From Paramoeba atlantica (taxonomy: Eukaryota > Protista > Discosea), in the NCBI GenBank assembly GCA_977017575.1, contig CDRNVI010000016.1, positions 372,001 to 436,000 on the forward strand: 64,000 nt of DNA, given 5' to 3'. The position numbers were made by a program, and so were the translations under genes. Position 1 is the first letter of the stretch. Each line of letters starts with the position of its first letter. The notes under the pieces were generated by a model. The model saw nothing but the letters and a program-made list of their open reading frames with translations. It did not search any database and was not told where the DNA came from. Below, one piece after another: positions 28,760-51,372 of the stretch.

Positions 28760-29481
28760 ACGATAGAGTGAGAAAGTTCAGAACACCTCGATACTGATGA
28801 ATGCGTACATTATTGTCAAGCAGTTACGCGACAGCCTTCCGAAGGCCTCACGGTTTAGGATCGATGAATGTAAAATTTATTTTCCTTATATTTATTTTCC
28901 TTATACGCCTTACCCACATTTTCCTTTCATTTGTATCAAACGTAAAACGTAATATCACATGACAAGTAACTCTGTGAGAGCTCTCGAAGCGGTATAAGTG
29001 TAATCCAGGGATGATAAGTCTCTCTGCACAGCTCTTTTTGAAACTTGAGTATTCTTTTTCCGCAATTATGCGCCTCGATGGATTAAATCTCGGTTCGAGA
29101 GGGGTCATTATCGTCATAATTGTCTTTTCATTATTTTTTTGCGCTCAGGACTCAAAGTGTGTACTGGGGTAGTTTTCTTCTCTTACAAATATTTGTTAAC
29201 GATCCTTCTAGAAACGTTAAAATCACGGGATAGCTCTTTTCTGGGTACTCCTTGTCCGTACCTCATCTTTAAAAGAACCTTTCCACTAGAAGTAAGCCCC
29301 CCTCTTGGGAGTCGCTATGGTGATTTTGGCGTTTTCGAAAAAAGTTGAAAAAAACAAATATTATTCTTTACTGAATTTATAAAGAGCTAAAAACAGCGGG
29401 AACGTACAAATCTCATAATTTTAAACGACAACGTGGTATGAACCCCAAGCGACCCCCTGTGCTAAAAATAAGGGGGGTCAC
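28760..29481 (-). mobile_element. Decayed Tc1-like element, same family as 38244-39175
   Basis: Reverse complement of 29130-29481 aligns with 38262-38611 (subterminal sequence and HTH KVLLKMRYGQGVPRKELSRDFNVSRRIV), with stops. It continues into degenerate catalytic-domain-like sequence. The left boundary is approximate. Confidence 0.75.
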
Positions 29482-31152: not shown

Positions 31153-31269
31153 GCTGGACCAACTCCCTGGTGAGAGCTGGAACTGTTGAGCCATGGGCTT
31201 CCCGGCCGAAAGGCCGCAGTCCTAACTCCCTGTTGGGAGTCGGAACTGTTGAGCCAGAACTCCCCGGCC
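31153..31269. repeat. Two diverged tandem units, 62-63 nt period, each with hairpins
   Basis: Shared blocks AACTCCCTG, GGAACTGTTGAGCCA and CCCGGCC, joined by a GGCC-GAAA-GGCC hairpin. Confidence 0.8.
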
Positions 31270-31339
31270 AAAATATATGGAAATGTAAAAAAGAAATTTT
31301 GATGAAGTTTATACATCAAAGATTACTCACGCTGCATTG

Positions 31340-31499
31340 AGAGGATTGGCGTCCGACCGTCTCTCCCACAGGAAGTGCGCGTGACTGCTTTCCGAGCCGG
31401 GGCTAGCCAAGCTCTACTTCCTCTAGTGAGGTGCAGTCTCCTATAACCCTGCTGGGGCAAAGCCGTAAGACGGTCGGACACCCCCTTTATTTCGCTTCG
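31340..31499. ncRNA. Unidentified structured RNA-like module flanked by 10-bp direct repeats
   Basis: Closing stem GTCCGACCGTCT (31351-62) / AGACGGTCGGAC (31468-79). Inner pairings AGGAAGT/ACTTCCT, GACTGC/GCAGTC and GAGC/GCTC. CGCTGCATTG at 31330-39 and 31500-09. Family not identified. Confidence 0.45.
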
Positions 31500-31521
31500 C
31501 GCTGCATTGCACGTTTCTGAA

Positions 31522-31544
31522 GATACAGTTTCTGTACCTTGTTG
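31522..31544 (+). other. Spliced-leader (mini-exon) 3'-half relic or mimic
   Basis: GATACAGTTTCTGTAC equals nt 17-32 of the T. cruzi SL as I recall it, and is followed by a 7-mer ending TTG like the SL 3' end. No GT donor follows, so this is not an SL RNA gene. Confidence 0.8.
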
Positions 31545-31590
31545 ATTTATTAACTTTGTACTAAACTTATCCTTCGGAGCATGGTCTCCA

Positions 31591-34500
31591 ATGTCACACC
31601 CCCAGCTCCCCACGCGCACTACGGCCTCCCTCGAGGACCTGTCAGCGCGCAGCGACACCCCCAGAACTTTCACTTCATCCGAAGTCGTGCAGTGCCTGTG
31701 AAGATCCGCCCCTCTGATAGCGTTTCATTCTCCCGGTAGAAGGCCCTGTAAGCATACGTGCCGCGACAAGACAAATTGTTTGCACCAGTGCTGCAAAATA
31801 GGAGTCCTCATCACGGGTGCTACAGATAATCCTCGACCAGAACGGCACCTCGGGGAGTCACCACTAACACGGTCACATAGCCCACTGACAGTAGCCACAT
31901 CGATAGAAACCGATCCGCAAGTCTCAACAGATGCCATACCGAGCGAAGAGGCCCAGTATGAGGAACTGTCAACCGGTAATCCGCCGTCGTCCGCCGTAAT
32001 ATCAGCAAACACGGCCAACTATCGCCCGTGTCGGCACATATGCAGCAATAAAACTCAGTGCAAACACCAATGTTGCAAGACAGTGGTCATGATCGTCGAA
32101 GAAAACAGTCAGAATCGAACATGGTCACTTAGGAATTTTTTTACGAGGACATCTCCTGCCGATGCTAGCATAATATCACCAGAGAGTCACCCTAGCTGGC
32201 CATCCGAGACAGGAAACTTGAGCGGTACTCAGGCTGTAAACCACGAACTCTCTCATACACGCACTCCCCCGGAACCTCATGTTAGTAGAGATAGCAATAT
32301 CCCCCCTGAATCAGTCTCTCGCCGTAATTGCGCACATAAATGTAAAGACAAAACCAAATGTAAGCATTCATGTTGTCAAAAAGGAGTTTTCCTCAAAGCT
32401 GGCGAAATCGCATACTCTGCCATAAGCTGGACGGCGCAAAATATTCTATTCCCTGCGCTTGGTGATGCCGAACGCGCTGCAGCTTCTTCACAAGCTTCGG
32501 AACCGCCCGCCCCAGTCGTGGCACCCCGCCTACCAGTTCGCACCAACTCCCTGCCCCGCACGAGTCCACTGTCCAGCCCTCTACGACATTTCCCATCAGC
32601 CCACGAGACGCAACCGGATTCCTCACCTTCTGTACCATGCATGGAATCCGTAGAAGAACCCACGCCCTTGCCTTTACCTTTACCTTTACCTTTACCTCCC
32701 CCACCAGAAGTAAATCGCAGAAGCACGATACTGCAGAGAATCCCTCGAGCCCAGCACGCCCCAGCCCTAACCGTTCAGCCCATTCCTGACCTGCAGAATC
32801 TTCTCGAAATATTTGACACAATAACGGGAGGACGAGTTCTGGTACGTTTTACAGAGGAACAGTGGGGCAATATTATTGAGAAAATTGAGGAACGTTGCAA
32901 TTTGTACGTTCACCCAGCGCGAAGCGATGAGGATGCCCTGTCTCAAGCTAAAACATTATCCGCGATCCTCGCCGTAACCGTCTTTGAAGCCGCACGGGAG
33001 AGCGACCCGACACACGGCTTTCTCCTGCGAACCAGAGCTGGCAGAGCCAGAAGGAACTCACGGCCCTTGGCCATCGAACGTACCACGAAGAGGCTTCGCA
33101 CACATGTTCGTCAACTCAAACGTGCACTTACCTTCATGAAGGGGGCCGCGAGAAACAAGCAGCGAGGAGAAATTAAGGAAGCAGGGATAGCGTTGAAGTT
33201 GTATGTGGAGGAAGCCAATCTACAGAAGAAGGAAATCGATCGACGATCGGCATTAACTCCGTTCCAGAGAAACCCGTGGACAGCTGCGGGCGAATGCCTA
33301 GATCGCACTGACCCAATCCAGGAACCCGAGAGGTCTTACCCTACAGTACCTCTTCAAGAGGTTGAGAACTTCTTCGCGGCATCATTGTCAAAACCTGAAG
33401 AGAATCACAGCATACCCCCCGTCGAGTTCTTGGGACCACGGCCTGACATCGACATGCCGTGGTCGGATATTGACGCCGAAATGATAGCATCTGGTGTATC
33501 TTCCAAGCCCTCGGGCGCCTGCTGCCTGGATCAGACACTGTATCCAACGCTCTGCTCAAGCGTTGTAGCCCTGTCTTTGTCCACATCGCTCAAGTATTCA
33601 ATGATATCCTTAAATTCGGGGTTTGCCCCCCCGCCTGGAAATCTGCCGTAACTCGCCTCATACACAAAGGTGGTCCTACATCAACTATGGAGAATTGGCG
33701 ACCGATAAGCTTAACTAGTTGCATAGGGAAACTTTTCCATTCAATCCTGAGCCACCGAATCCTTCAACATTCCTTGGATTCTCATGCGCTCGATACATCA
33801 GTACAAAAAGGATTTCTACCACACATGAATGGGACCGTCGAGCATACACAAGTCTTATGCGAACTCATTGAACACCAACGACGTCACAAACGGCAATACT
33901 TACTTGCACAGTTCGATATCAAGAACGCTTTCGGATCTATTCCCCACGCAGTACTGTTACAATCCCTAAAATGGGCCCGTGTCTCCCCAATTCTAATTAA
34001 CTATATCAGCGCGCTGTACAAAGGAGCATCTATTCAAATCAAATGTGCTGAAGGCCTTACGAAGTCGATCGAGATCGGCCGTGGAGTATTACAAGGAGAT
34101 ACACTGTCGCCGATCTTATTCAACTTGGCAATGGAATTGGTTTCTTCGCTTCATCTGTTCAAGTTGCCCATAGTACGGAATCACTTGGGATGGAAAGGAA
34201 ACTTTTCTGAAGGCCTTTGCTGACGACCTCAGTATACTCACGAACACACCAAAGGAAATGCAAATTGCCACGAACGTAATGGTCATGACAAGACGACCCC
34301 AGATAATGATTGACGCAACACCTATTCCTCAAATATGCGATAATGGTCGCACATTCCTGGGTGTGACTCTCGGACCTGGTGCCCAGCATGGTAAAATTCT
34401 GTTCCTAAAGCTACGCAATCGACTCCGTACCTGGTTACACAACATATCTTCCAGCTCCCACGACCTACCCGCCCGACTCTGGATATACAATAATGGTATT

Positions 34501-35862
34501 ATCTCCCGCCTTCGCTACTCTTTTGTTGTCAATTCATGTCTGACTTTTAACCACGTTCTGCGCCTCCAGCCATGCGCTACAAATGAAATCAGAAAATGGT
34601 TAAATGTAGCAAAATCCGCGACAAGCGAACTGTTGTACTCCGAGCATGGTTGGAACCTCGTGAGCTTATCCAAACTCTAGCTTCTTTCAACCGCGAGCGC
34701 CGTGGAACAAATGGAGAAATCACGCAATCCCGATGTCCAGCACGCCCTGCGAGAACGCATCAGGAGAGATGAAAACAAGAGAAAAGCGGGGTACATTCGT
34801 CCGCCGACTGACATACTCGGTTCAACTCACAATAACGTACGACGACTTCTCGACAGTGAATATGAGAGGCATCTTTCGGAAGCCGTGCAAAGGCGCACTT
34901 CAGTTGCGGGAAGATGGTTCCGCGTAGCGACGGAAGCAGACCTCGCGAGGGACTTCGCTGCCGCCCTATGAAATCTCAAAAGCGAATCGCTATCACGATT
35001 TACGGCTTCCGTACTCACAGAAAGGCCACTCCCCACTAGAGTGTCTCTCCGCAAATAGGGCGTATCGACACACACAAGCAACAAGTGTCCTATCTGCGAT
35101 ACTGAAACGCAAACCGCGCGACATATTCTCTCCGGGTGTAGAAAAGCACTCGAGCAAGAACGATATACTCTGCGACATAACATGGTGCTACAAGCCCTCG
35201 CAAACTCTGTGCAGAAATTCCAAGGGACCAGTCTATATCACTTTGACCTCCCTCACTTTCCTTCTACCCCTCCGTGGCTCACGGAACTTGACACCGAGCT
35301 GCGACCGGATGGGTGGGTGAAACTGTCCAACGGGGAGGAGTATATTATAGAATTGACGTGCCCCTGGGAGGAAAATTTTGTCTACGCACACGAACGAAAA
35401 ACTGCCAAGTACACAAATTTCTACCATTCCCGCAAGCTCACAAACCCGAGCACTTTCCTACTCGTTTTCGAAGTCGGAGCGAGAGGAAAAATAAGCAGTG
35501 CCGGTCGAACTCTGAACTCTCTATTTATGGGTAATGATGAGCTGGTGGCTGATTGCCGGCGCAATATGACCGTGAAGGCTCTGAGAGGGAGCTTCATAGT
35601 GTATCAAAACCGCAATGACAAAAATTGGATGGAGGAGAACGTTCTTGGCGACGCTGAATAGAAACGGGTGACCAAAACGTGTTTTGTGCGCGTTTTCACC
35701 ATATAAATCTCTGCAGGATTACCTGTATGATACAATATACCTTTCCTACCATCACCTTTCCATATACATTGAATATTTTGGAGCCACATGTACGTGGCTC
35801 CGGGATTTGGACTTGCAAAAGCAGGGTTATAGGAGACCGCACCTTACTAGAGGATTTTTTTT
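31591..35862 (+). mobile_element. HERO-like (R2 superfamily) non-LTR retrotransposon with RT and restriction-like endonuclease, decayed
   Basis: PGSDTVSNALLKRC, ENWRPISLTSCIGKLF, QKGF, QFDIKNAFGSIPH, RGVLQGDTLSPILF, AFADDL, RLWIYNNGIISRL, CPICDTETQTARHILSGC, RYTLRHNMVL, RPDG...IELTCPWE...HERKTAKY. Frameshifts near 33520 and 34140; stops at 31699, 34678, 34969 and 35057. The true 5' end is probably upstream, around 31320. Confidence 0.9.
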
Positions 35863-36569
35863 CTAAATATTTTGGACTCAGAGGGGTGATAGGCAAGGAA
35901 ACGCTCTAGTTTTTGGAGATCCGTTGAATGCCGAAGGAATTGGGTCAAAAGCTCTTACGGTGTGCTCTATGGTTTGGGAGGCAACCAGTACCTGGACTGT
36001 GTATCCTTCCTTAGCCACCCAAAATGAGCTTTCCGAAGAATAGGGTCCTTTGGATGTTCTCATGGGGTTCTGAGCAACCAGGAGGGCACCGGGTTAACGC
36101 AAAGTAGCTGGGGAAAGTTTTCAACGTCATTTTGTGGCGATTCGCCTGTGAAATGCGAAGTTGTCTTGGAGAGTCACCATGTGACTGTTAAGGAGCATAA
36201 ATCGGGCGTGGTCTCTGGCCAGGTAGAAGACTTTCGGCTTCCGGTCATAGGAGTTGAAGTGATTCTTCATAGCAAAAGGGAAAGGTTCACAAGCGAATAC
36301 TGAACAGCAATAAGTTCCTTATACGCGGTGATTGTTTTCCACGTAGAAGTGCCCTGCTGTAAGTGTGGCTTTTTTTCTGTGAATAACACCTAAAATTAAG
36401 GAGGACGAAAATTAAGGAAACTATTTCGTGTCACAAAGGAATCGCCCTTATTTAAAATCTTTCTTAATTTCAGTTTCTGCTTTCCATACACTCGCTGAAT
36501 TAGCTTAGTAAGCGAGTTAAATACTCACCGTGTCTCTTTCAATAACTTATTATTCGATTAACACTTAAA

Positions 36570-38205: not shown

Positions 38206-39759
38206 GCTGTAAAATTGTTAATAATTTTTTCGTTTAACAATTAAACCCCCGCTCACGAATAAGTGACCCCCCCTTATTTTTAGCACATGGGGGCGTGGGT
38301 GGGTTATCATACCACTGTTTCGTTCAAAATTTCGAGACCTGCACGTTCCCGCTGTTTTTAGCTCATTTTAAAATTTTAAAATTTAGTCAAAAAAAATAAT
38401 TGGCTTTTCAACTTTTTTTTCCAAAAAGTGACCAAATCACCATATCGGCTTCCAAAAGGGGCGCTTACGGATAGTGGTAAGGTTCTTTTGAAGATGAGAC
38501 ATGGAGAAGGTGTTCCGATAAAACAATTATCCCGTGATCTTAACGTCTCTAGAAGGATAATCAAAAAATATCTGAACGAAAAAAAATCTAGCGGGGAATA
38601 CACTTTGAGTCCTGTGGGTGGAGGTATTTGGTTATTCTACCAAATGACACATCTATTACAAGCAAGACGTACATAGAAACATCAAAACAGGTAGATTTCC
38701 CCCCTAATAGTGTATTTCAACAGGATGGGGCAACGGCACATACTGCCCGTGCCTCCAAAGAGTACATTGAGAATCGAATGAGTGATGTTCTAAGAAACTG
38801 GCCCCCCAACTCGCCCGACCTTTCCCCCATAAAAAACGTCTGGTCTATGGTCCAAGAGGCGGTAGACGAACAAACGCCATCGGACAAGCCTTCACTTATC
38901 CGATGTGTACGTAAAGTATGGTCTTCTTTAACTCAAAAAGTGATCGACAAAACAGTATTGAGTTTTGATTCTCGACTTAAGGAGTGTATAAGATTGAAGG
39001 ACGAAAATGTGAAAAAATGATAATTTTTCTCTAAATTGTGCGTATTCGTTTCTTTTTGTCTCATTTCTTCACGCGCAAAGTCCTTGTGTTGAGATCTTCA
39101 AAATGCAACAAAAATCAGCTCAAACGGACATTTGTACGAAAAAAAAGAAGGGGGTCACTTTTGTGAGCGGGGGTTTATTATTATTAAAAAATTATTAATA
39201 ATTATTAATAAGGTCTTAGTAGGCAGATAGGACATAAAAATACCAACGTCAGAATATTTTATTCCCTCATATTTTTCTTTCTAATTCCGCTTCTTGCCAA
39301 GGAAGAATCCTGGGGGGGATCAACTCAGAAAACTTTGGTTCTTAAGATCTTAGAAATCACGTTTTTTGACTATGTATGATGATGTTTTTTGGCTAATGTA
39401 TCCTAAAAAAATAGATAATAAACGTCTAGTTTTAAAAATGAGAATGCGGCTCTGAATGATCCTGTCAACATGCAACTCCATTTAAGCTTGGCAGTATATA
39501 CATGAAGACTTCATGGATGTCCATGAAGACCTACATACAGTAGTATGTAGGTCTAACCAAACTTTCAGAATCTTTTAATGTCTCTTACATGAAGTACGTG
39601 CAACGTGCTTCCACTTTATTTGATCTTGTCTGATCTCACCGATGGTATTAACGCGGACCAAAAACCTAAAATGCAAAAATATTAATAATTATTATTAATT
39701 GACTCTTTCTTTTAGTAATAATTATTAATAATTGTTATTAAAAAAATTATTAATACAGC
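38206..39759. mobile_element. Outer foldback/MITE-like element with AT-rich inverted ends, interrupted by the Tc1 copy
   Basis: GCTGTA...TTAATAATTTTTT...TAACAATTA at the left resembles the reverse complement of 39725-39759. The AT-rich array resumes at 39176-39210 after the Tc1. Confidence 0.4.
38244..39175 (+). mobile_element. Tc1-like DNA transposon, internally deleted
   Basis: TIRs AACCCCCGCTCAC..AAGTGACCCC / GGGGTCACTT..GTGAGCGGGGGTT flanked by TA at both ends. HTH remnant at 38428-38611. Catalytic C-half FQQDGATAHT...WPPNSPDLSPIKNVW (D35E spacing, Glu changed to Lys). Confidence 0.92.
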
Positions 39760-50961: not shown

Positions 50962-51372
50962 GTGTGTACGTACACGTGTAAGTTAGCCACTTACACTTAG
51001 TGTACACACTTTTTTTGTAACACGTTTTGTAAAGGTTGCACAGCGAAAAAATGATAATGTTTACTTACTGAACGAAACTAGTCAAGTTTAGTGTAGTGTT
51101 TCATCTGATTACATCCTTTCGTGACTTTTTTAAACGGTTTTATCTACTTTCTCTTACCATACGTAGTGGTTCACTGAACCACCTTTTGGTTCAATGGTTC
51201 ATCGGGTTCATTGAACCCATTTTTGAACCCACTGAACCCATTTCTAAAGTAAACAAGATTTCGAAAGACTTGGTATTTTAGGCTGCTTTCTCAGCTAAAA
51301 ACTCAGTATTTGCACATGAAGTGTTACAGAAACGGTATCTTTATCTTTAAAAGGATAATTATGCATGCCTTA

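Follow-up and report, generated by a model that had tools for sequence, protein, structure and literature searches.

A piece of the host spliced leader heads an R2-superfamily retrotransposon and its relatives

The stretch of DNA analyzed here (the window, 64,000 nucleotides) contains an R2-type retrotransposon whose 5' terminus is a piece of the host's own spliced leader (SL), and the same head recurs throughout the element's family and in other families of the genome. We consider that the window element is probably a retrocopy of an SL-carrying RNA and that its 5' boundary was set at integration by microhomology between an A-run and SL nt 13-15. The head is identical to the host SL and stands at the terminus of all copies that keep the family 5' UTR, relics stacked on other relics occur, and one insertion site can be restored in frame to its empty state. 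The origin of the head from a leader-carrying RNA is well supported; from the same observations, we infer that trans-splicing supplied the leader and that a microhomology step fixed where the copy begins. The window locus genuinely exemplifies a habit seen across the genome and, as far as we found, undescribed.

The leader piece and the element behind it

The host SL exon, defined from the SL RNA genes of the 45.7-Mb assembly, is 38 nt long and of the kinetoplastid type. Approximately 40 places represent true SL RNA genes, reading ..AACTTTAACGATAAAGATACAGTTTCTGTACCTTGTTG|GTATGAGAAGC with conserved sequence upstream and with GTATGAGAAG as the intron. These genes lie in ~2.56-kb tandem arrays (C97, C107) and in smaller groups, and an Rfam scan of one SL-gene stretch (L066, C3) found 5S rRNA genes adjoining them. 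The SL gene, its intron, and the linkage to 5S rRNA genes point to a kinetoplastid host, probably a free-living bodonid. A literature search found no match to the exact 3' end of this leader.

The SL RNA genes also show irregularities. At C74:104184-121534, they are spaced by 2.7, 7.3, and 7.3 kb, compared with 2.56 kb in the regular arrays, and this irregular spacing may reflect insertions of ~4.7 kb inside the array. Second gene copies lie 297 nt downstream of regular ones at C11:3818 and 6711 and at C24:267158/267455, and in the C11 pair the exon has C in place of A (GTCCCTTG). This variant SL (GTCCC) is absent from the relics of the genome, and the variant gene therefore says nothing on renewal of the head.

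Within the window, the SL 16-mer GATACAGTTTCTGTAC occupies positions 31522-31537 on the forward strand, followed by CTTGTTG to 31544 and then by ATTTATT, with no GT. Positions 31522-31544 match nt 16-38 of the host SL exon, as read in the SL RNA genes, without a difference and end at its exact last base, after which the element's own untranslated region (UTR) begins and the GTATGAGAAG intron is absent. The two A's at 31520-31521 derive either from SL nt 14-15 or from the target. An initial annotation of this DNA had pointed out the lack of a GT donor behind the motif, which holds, and had identified the 16-mer as nt 17-32 of the Trypanosoma cruzi SL, in agreement with a published T. cruzi-type SL in which the 16-mer takes up those positions (PMC3795323).

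Other statements of that annotation required revision. The first ATG, placed there at 31591 and 46 nt on, is in fact at 31581, 36 nt downstream of the SL, and this ATG is the start of the open reading frame (ORF) in longer copies. The 16-mer has a single exact copy in the window, where 0.02 matches are expected at two or fewer mismatches; a two-mismatch match at 51324-51339 on the reverse strand lacks SL-like surroundings. The earlier chance estimate for an exact 16-mer is moot because the motif is the host SL, with ~895 genomic occurrences at one mismatch or fewer (reversed control, 1). We also rejected the suggestion of a second, degenerate SL copy at 31500-31521, which has GTTTCTG alone in common with the SL. 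Its local alignment score of 7 is equaled by 45% of random 62-nt window pieces, and after removal of a 159-bp module from the upstream flank, the score of 9 is equaled by 11%; neither alignment is above chance.

The features of the locus are as follows.

31331-31521, no strand assigned: upstream flank, outside the element, with the 159-bp module (31341-31499) between 10-bp direct repeats and then 12 nt (31510-31521, with GTTTCTG); the same flank is found at C29 (L004, L100).
31522-31544, forward strand: SL head, nt 16-38 of the host SL and 5' terminus of the element, by identity with the SL exon and by its presence in 20 of 20 family copies.
31545-31580, forward strand: 5' UTR, with an A/T-rich spacer that varies among copies, followed by the conserved TTTGTACTAA..CGGAG block, whose final AG directly precedes the ATG (18 copies aligned by eye).
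31581-31729, forward strand: ORF start, from the ATG at 31581 to the TAG at 31727-31729, by comparison with L002 and L003.
31780-33651, forward strand: ORF fragment of the N-terminal region, which in translation contains recurring Cys/His motifs as well as a linker; no Pfam match.
33687-34223, forward strand: ORF fragment with the reverse transcriptase core (Pfam RVT_1, E 3.6e-19).
34258-34971, forward strand: two ORF fragments of the thumb/linker region (34258-34680 and 34702-34971), the frame being broken between them.
35182-35661, forward strand: ORF fragment with a putative restriction-like endonuclease motif, RPD .. ELT .. ERK, read by eye in the translation; no Pfam endonuclease model matches.
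35662-35739, forward strand: 3' UTR and 3' terminus, ending GATACAATATA without poly(A); seven other copies end at the same base.
35813-35854, no strand assigned: downstream flank, outside the element (3' end at 35739), the inverted partner of 31419-31460.

The element is a non-LTR retrotransposon of the R2 superfamily, the restriction-like endonuclease group that comprises R2, R4, CRE, NeSL, and HERO, and is 4.2 kb long (31520/31522-35739). Its reverse transcriptase belongs to this superfamily, as evidenced by the Pfam match in the window and by a longer fragment from the copy at C99, which matches RVT_1 with an E of 9.5e-32 and has R2 proteins as its best Protein Data Bank (PDB) matches (E 2e-36), followed by LINE-1 ORF2p (1e-23). 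A tblastn search with the C99 fragment covers window positions 34141-35655 at 89% identity. The zinc finger model zf-RVT matches this fragment weakly, below the cut-off, and Pfam gave no match to Exo_endo_phos, the N-terminal AP endonuclease. Moreover, the element has no LTRs, inserts with a site preference, and has a defined 3' end: eight copies, the window copy included, stop at the same base (35739) without poly(A), and their flanks diverge after it. Relatives from outside the species share 24 to 29% identity and are either unnamed or R2-named animal sequences. These comparisons support membership in the R2 superfamily as a whole rather than in a finer clade, so that the HERO-like label of the initial annotation would be a candidate assignment.

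The window copy is old and decayed. Its frame lies in at least five pieces and ~625 nt are missing; it is dead. Compared with L002 and L003, the missing stretch was deleted at 31728/31730, which is why the frame stops at 31727-31729. Two near-full-length copies that we examined are broken as well, into three to four frames. Both flanks of the window copy are found together with the element at C29:441400-448100, at 95 to 98% identity, and this locus is therefore a duplicate of the same insertion. The C29 copy has lost the head and the first ~475 nt and has an extra 1.26 kb; on its left side, the deletion begins 12 nt before the head, where it is bounded by two short words that resemble each other, TGCAT(C)TTG. 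An Rfam scan of the whole window returned nothing at gathering score, and a scan of 31250-31950 returned nothing up to an E of 5; neither a hammerhead or HDV-like ribozyme nor any other known RNA was recognized at the 5' end.

The element sits at the center of a palindromic host repeat, the arms of which (31419-31460 and 35813-35854) are both outside it. Long inverted repeats at 29146-29457 and 38291-38614, 77 to 78% complementary, bracket the whole region, and the two inverted pairs suggest a foldback or DNA-transposon-like host into whose center the retrotransposon inserted. In the upstream flank, a 10-bp direct repeat, CGCTGCATTG, at 31331-31340 and 31500-31509 brackets the 159-bp module, which resembles a small insertion that duplicated its target and has partial copies at L018, L030, C7, C65, and C20. 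Downstream, positions 35857-36004 hold a MITE-like dispersed repeat of ~150 nt with ~50 copies at 76 to 88% identity, often in inverted pairs ~600 bp apart.

Leader heads across the family and the genome

Two expectations had been set beforehand, namely, that the host SL contain the core of the motif and that other copies of the element carry it. The core is present in the host SL, and the SL head lies directly upstream in all 20 copies that keep the family's 5' UTR block (TTTGTACTAA .. CGGAGCATG). After removal of evident duplicates, these copies have at least 16 different, unrelated 5' flanks. No SL-less source copy with an AG at the junction was found among the 20. At 12 further places, which have other UTR variants, a short spacer separates the end of the SL from TTTGTACTAA. 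Copies of the family differ pairwise by a mean of 1.5% in the 23-nt head versus 9.7% in the next 40 nt, and subfamilies that are 14 to 23% apart over the first 200 nt show zero fixed difference in the head.

The habit extends beyond this family. Two more R2-type families, with ~50% protein identity and unrelated UTRs, have the same SL head. A second, abundant family, in which the SL is followed by GTACATTTT, makes up most of the 237 matches to SL plus GGTA. In addition, SL nt 3-38 were found at 469 loci, commonly directly after a poly(A) run (poly(A)-type units). Of 10 ORFs scanned behind near-full SLs, one encodes a reverse transcriptase domain, and another two match LsmAD weakly, below the threshold; on sequence evidence of this kind, we would not claim that cellular retrogenes lie behind the poly(A)-plus-SL loci. 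Relatives of the element in assembly ERZ24900291, at 48 to 71% identity, carry the same SL and therefore come from the same species or a near strain. A relative at 29% identity (ERZ26222911) adjoins an animal-type gene and has no SL core. Our literature search, which was not exhaustive, found no report of leader-headed retrotransposons in kinetoplastids.

In the abundant family, GTACATTTT (L061-L090, e.g., L061:1500 on the reverse strand) imitates the exon/intron junction of an SL RNA gene, G|GTA, with an AUUUUG word inside, and long stem-forming sequences follow the leader piece. This family may be an SL-RNA-like noncoding partner of an R2-type element.

The variety of flanks bears on the idea that the element inserts into SL RNA genes in the manner of CRE, SLACS, and CZAR, so that the SL piece would be target sequence. 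The insertion site of SLACS and CZAR is SL nt 11/12, which the head boundary at nt 11-16 recalls; the endonuclease superfamily is the same, and the uneven spacing of the C74 SL genes (2.7 and 7.3 kb) hints at insertions into an array. However, the upstream flanks, at least 16 of them different, are unrelated to SL genes or their promoter; the copies examined are located in LRR genes or in other repeats; and what comes after the SL piece is element UTR rather than the GTATGAGAAG intron. A CRE-type insertion leaves SL nt 1-11 upstream and the rest downstream, the reverse of what is seen here, and SLACS-type proteins are absent from the 120 best database matches. We therefore rejected a remnant of SL-gene targeting, one of three origins offered by the initial annotation, on account of the flanks and of an SL piece on the wrong side, and we regard it as highly improbable.

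Integration, splicing, and the origin of the head

The point at which the SL-like sequence begins depends on the kind of unit. In the R2-type families it starts at nt 11-16, most commonly with ATAAAG, and none of ~45 copies convincingly extends to SL nt 9 or 10; in poly(A)-type units it starts at nt 3. The copy at C99 shows what such a site looked like when empty. Its flanks join in frame into one leucine-rich repeat (LRR) ORF (..DIGVIK|ISCNKFTGG..). The joined frame has the correct repeat length, and nothing was duplicated or lost at the site. Here, the A-run before GATACAG belongs to the target, and therefore only nt 16-38 are certainly element-derived. Three other copies, two of which are mutual duplicates, lie in sense orientation at the same point of the LRR unit, just upstream of NK(F/L)xG codons, with ATAAA or TATAAA at the end of the flank. 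On the 3' side, the motif coding for NK(F/L)xG is common to three insertions (four copies, two being duplicates). The window flank reads ..CTGAA before GATACAG, consistent with an A-run model. From one clean empty-site reconstruction and three less clean ones, we infer that the boundary is set at integration, when an upstream DNA end in A's pairs with the complement of SL A13-A15.

In the 5' flanks of L005 and L006, a 15- to 16-nt target word (TATGGYTTCTATAAA) is present twice. At L006, the word follows the 3' end of another R2-type copy, and at L005, the two occurrences are separated by GATAT alone. This doubling indicates that one site was used more than once and that the first insert was subsequently lost.

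Evidence for splicing comes from relics that carry a second leader. The end of the SL is joined to TTTCTGTACCTTGTTG at 17 loci (control, 0), right after the ACAG of a relic, and to ATACAGTTTCTG (ATACAG..) at two loci (control, 0), right after the AAAG of a relic. The search covered these two joints, and within it stacked relics are rare (19 versus ~895 relics, ~2%). As they are cut after AG, SL-headed copies must have been re-transcribed, trans-spliced inside the relic, and reverse-transcribed again. One example (L017) belongs to the window family, and another stands behind a full SL (C16:34322-34373). L017 again begins at ATAAAG, and the C16 locus, which is of the poly(A) type, begins at nt 3; the same kind of RNA therefore yields different boundaries with different integration machineries, which supports a boundary made at integration.

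These observations can be assembled into the following sequence of events, which we hold to be the probable one. The element RNA would receive the SL at its 5' end by trans-splicing, and the element's reverse transcriptase would copy the SL-bearing RNA into the genome by target-primed reverse transcription, so that the SL joins the new copy. The start of the copy inside the SL (the A-run of nt 11-15, then G16) would be fixed at integration. Targets would be opened by the family directly behind an A-run (..AAA|TT), which for several copies is a fixed LRR codon position, in sense orientation; the upstream DNA end would pair with the complement of SL A13-A15 and prime the second strand, with loss of the first 10 to 15 SL bases. 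SL-headed copies could then be transcribed anew and trans-spliced at the ACAG of the relic, giving stacked relics. The window copy was duplicated together with its flanks (C29). A retrocopy of trans-spliced element RNA was the first origin named in the initial annotation, and it is the best supported of the three: the head runs to the exact end of the SL exon without intron, it stands before all 5'-complete copies behind different flanks, and the stacked relics are joined at AG.

Several observations count against this account. The limit on the head start, at nt 11, would also fit an RNA that itself starts near nt 11-16. Directly after the SL, AATTATTTT or ATTTAT recurs in unrelated families, and the common AATTATTTT start would not be predicted by trans-splicing alone. 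The junction in all SL-headed family copies reads TTG|UTR, that is, TG and not AG, and so the same junction cannot be remade through an AG acceptor. The attachment point in the UTR varies among subfamilies, as does the spacer length (1 to 15 nt before TTTGTACTAA), and no AG is available there; an SL fused at the AG just before the ATG has 0 matches in the genome. The absence of an SL-less AG source copy, the ~2% share of stacked relics, and the absence of these ATG-proximal AG fusions would thus all weigh against trans-splicing as the source. With a TTG|UTR junction and no SL-less source copy, the identity of the head with the host SL across subfamily divergence is therefore left unexplained.

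None of the sequencing runs that hold the element is recorded as RNA, and three of unrecorded kind look like genome data. Read depth in the SL bins is ~60x that of the element, as expected of a multi-copy word. The single candidate RNA run holds one 226-nt contig, which is another transcript and overlaps the locus in the SL plus 18 nt.

The variable junction could instead arise by template jumping. End-to-end template jumping by the R2 reverse transcriptase is established biochemistry, and the enzyme, on completing an unspliced element RNA at its 5' end, might pass to the SL exon at its 3' end, either the free exon (the intermediate of the first step of trans-splicing) or another SL-bearing RNA. 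The last base of the SL would then be fused to a variable UTR point without any acceptor site, which accommodates an SL 3' end that is always complete, an attachment point that varies, and the missing AG. Repeated jumps would be expected to produce the short duplications of flank plus partial SL found at several 5' junctions (L088; L102 at 2752). Nevertheless, the 19 stacked relics from the two joints searched lie exactly after AG and fit splicing, a rare RNA species would be needed as acceptor, and the common AATTATTTT start would go unexplained. We judge template jumping to be quite unlikely.

A possible, though doubtful, alternative is that the SL was captured once or a few times and has since been inherited in cis as a functional head kept by selection. 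Such a head might act as a portable internal promoter or initiator, as a translation or stability signal resembling the end of a trans-spliced mRNA, or as homology at the 5' junction, and the element RNA would have no need of trans-splicing. All 20 of the 5'-complete copies are headed, with zero SL-less source copies; the TG junction prevents renewal in place; the head is ~6x better conserved than the adjacent UTR; its 5' boundary is nearly constant, at nt 11-16, over ~45 R2-type copies; and splicing at the AG before the ATG has left no copies. A precedent is the Pr77 head found on trypanosomatid LINEs (PMC1874656, PMC8190864). However, the same 23 nt equal the host SL in families that are ~50% identical in protein and have unrelated UTRs, which renewal from the host explains more easily; poly(A)-type families carry nearly the whole SL; and the stacked relics show real trans-splicing feeding retrotransposition. 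The cis-encoded SL mimic, the third origin in the initial annotation, is likewise possible though doubtful, and fits the lack of an SL-less source copy and the TG junction. The more specific version, in which R2-type elements depend on the head as a heritable module that provides A-run junction homology and maybe a start signal or an imitation of a trans-spliced end, is unlikely. If it were true, the elements would bypass the host rule that a leader is added to every mRNA by trans-splicing.

Comparison with known systems and further arrangements of relics

The closest parallel to the retrocopy reading is found in dinoflagellates, in which retrogenes carry relic spliced leaders, DinoSL or DinoRL (PMC5585692, PMC6050394, PMC12014239). 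As in that system, the host SL exon is here written in DNA to its last base, directly 5' of a retrocopied unit and genome-wide, and stacked, 5'-truncated relics arise via renewed trans-splicing at an acceptor (AG) inside the relic. The differences are that the host here has a 38-nt kinetoplastid-type SL; that the tagged units examined are mainly retrotransposons, including R2-type elements without poly(A), rather than cellular retrogenes; that R2-type copies start inside the SL at nt 11-16; and that stacked relics amount to ~2%.

SLACS, CZAR, and CRE1/2 of kinetoplastids and NeSL-1 of nematodes, like the window element, are placed in the restriction-like endonuclease group of non-LTR elements and are joined to SL sequence in trans-splicing hosts. 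In those elements, the SL sequence is the target, with insertion in SL RNA genes, whereas in the present family the SL piece belongs to the element, as its 5' terminus, the flanks are not SL genes, and the preferred target is an A-run site in LRR genes. Within its superfamily, the element resembles R2 in inserting in sense orientation at a fixed site of a transcribed host gene, in having a 3' end without poly(A), and, by our proposal, in a 5' junction helped by homology between the cDNA end and the upstream target. R2, however, is co-transcribed with 28S rRNA, its 5' end is freed by an HDV-like ribozyme, and the homology is 28S sequence; here, Rfam found no ribozyme, and the homology would be the A-run common to the SL and the target.

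In kinetoplastids, polycistronic transcripts are cut, and a capped leader is added to every mRNA. To our knowledge, a usable heritable retrotransposon 5' end under this rule takes two known forms, the Pr77 head and the SL-gene parasitism of SLACS/CZAR. If our reading is true, the leader itself as element head would be a third solution. It would also mean that, with ~900 relics in a genome of 45.7 Mb, ordinary trans-spliced RNAs of a kinetoplastid feed retrotransposition extensively and that retrotransposition events bear a built-in tag by which they could be dated and counted, as with DinoSL in dinoflagellates. It would be relevant as well to the reverse-transcriptase-mediated intron loss proposed for kinetoplastids. 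The puzzle it poses is a head that destroys its own acceptor, yet is kept identical to the host leader.

Kinetoplastid elements described so far are SL-gene specific (SLACS, CZAR, CRE) or have the Pr77 promoter/ribozyme head (PMC1874656, PMC3185411, PMC8190864), and for Bodo saltans, the genome publication names ingi, SLACS/CZAR, VIPER, and TATE but makes no reference to leader heads (PMC4728078). Pr77 acts as a Pol II promoter inside the element; its transcripts are unspliced, and transcription factors of the SL genes bind to it (PMC1874656, PMC8190864). Like the Pr77 of L1Tc/ingi/SIDER, the head found here is short, common to several retroelement families, and linked to the SL-gene machinery. 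Unlike Pr77, which is not the SL exon and gives unspliced transcripts, it is the SL exon itself, and a promoter role would be hypothetical.

Finally, individual relics show further arrangements. Unrelated units with AATTATTT or ATTTAT directly after the leader (e.g., L035, L037, L045-L047, and L101:288) are often pyrimidine rich and AG ended up to the ATG, resembling a trans-splice acceptor region downstream of the relic. At L037:1475 and at L040:1465 (reverse strand), SL 5' fragments (nt 3-13 and nt 3-16) lie upstream of a complete relic, after poly(A); they could be abortive copies or leaders split by later insertion. At L031-L034 (C1:9752-25065), a 5.09-kb tandem repeat contains a full relic with the same 33-nt flank on both sides (ACTTTTCTTATTTG..AAAAGT). 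At L058-L060 (C2:553054-553104), two relics joined head to head form an almost perfect palindrome centered on CTTTAACGATAAAG; divergent units flank it, and a reverse transcriptase is encoded in one of the two.
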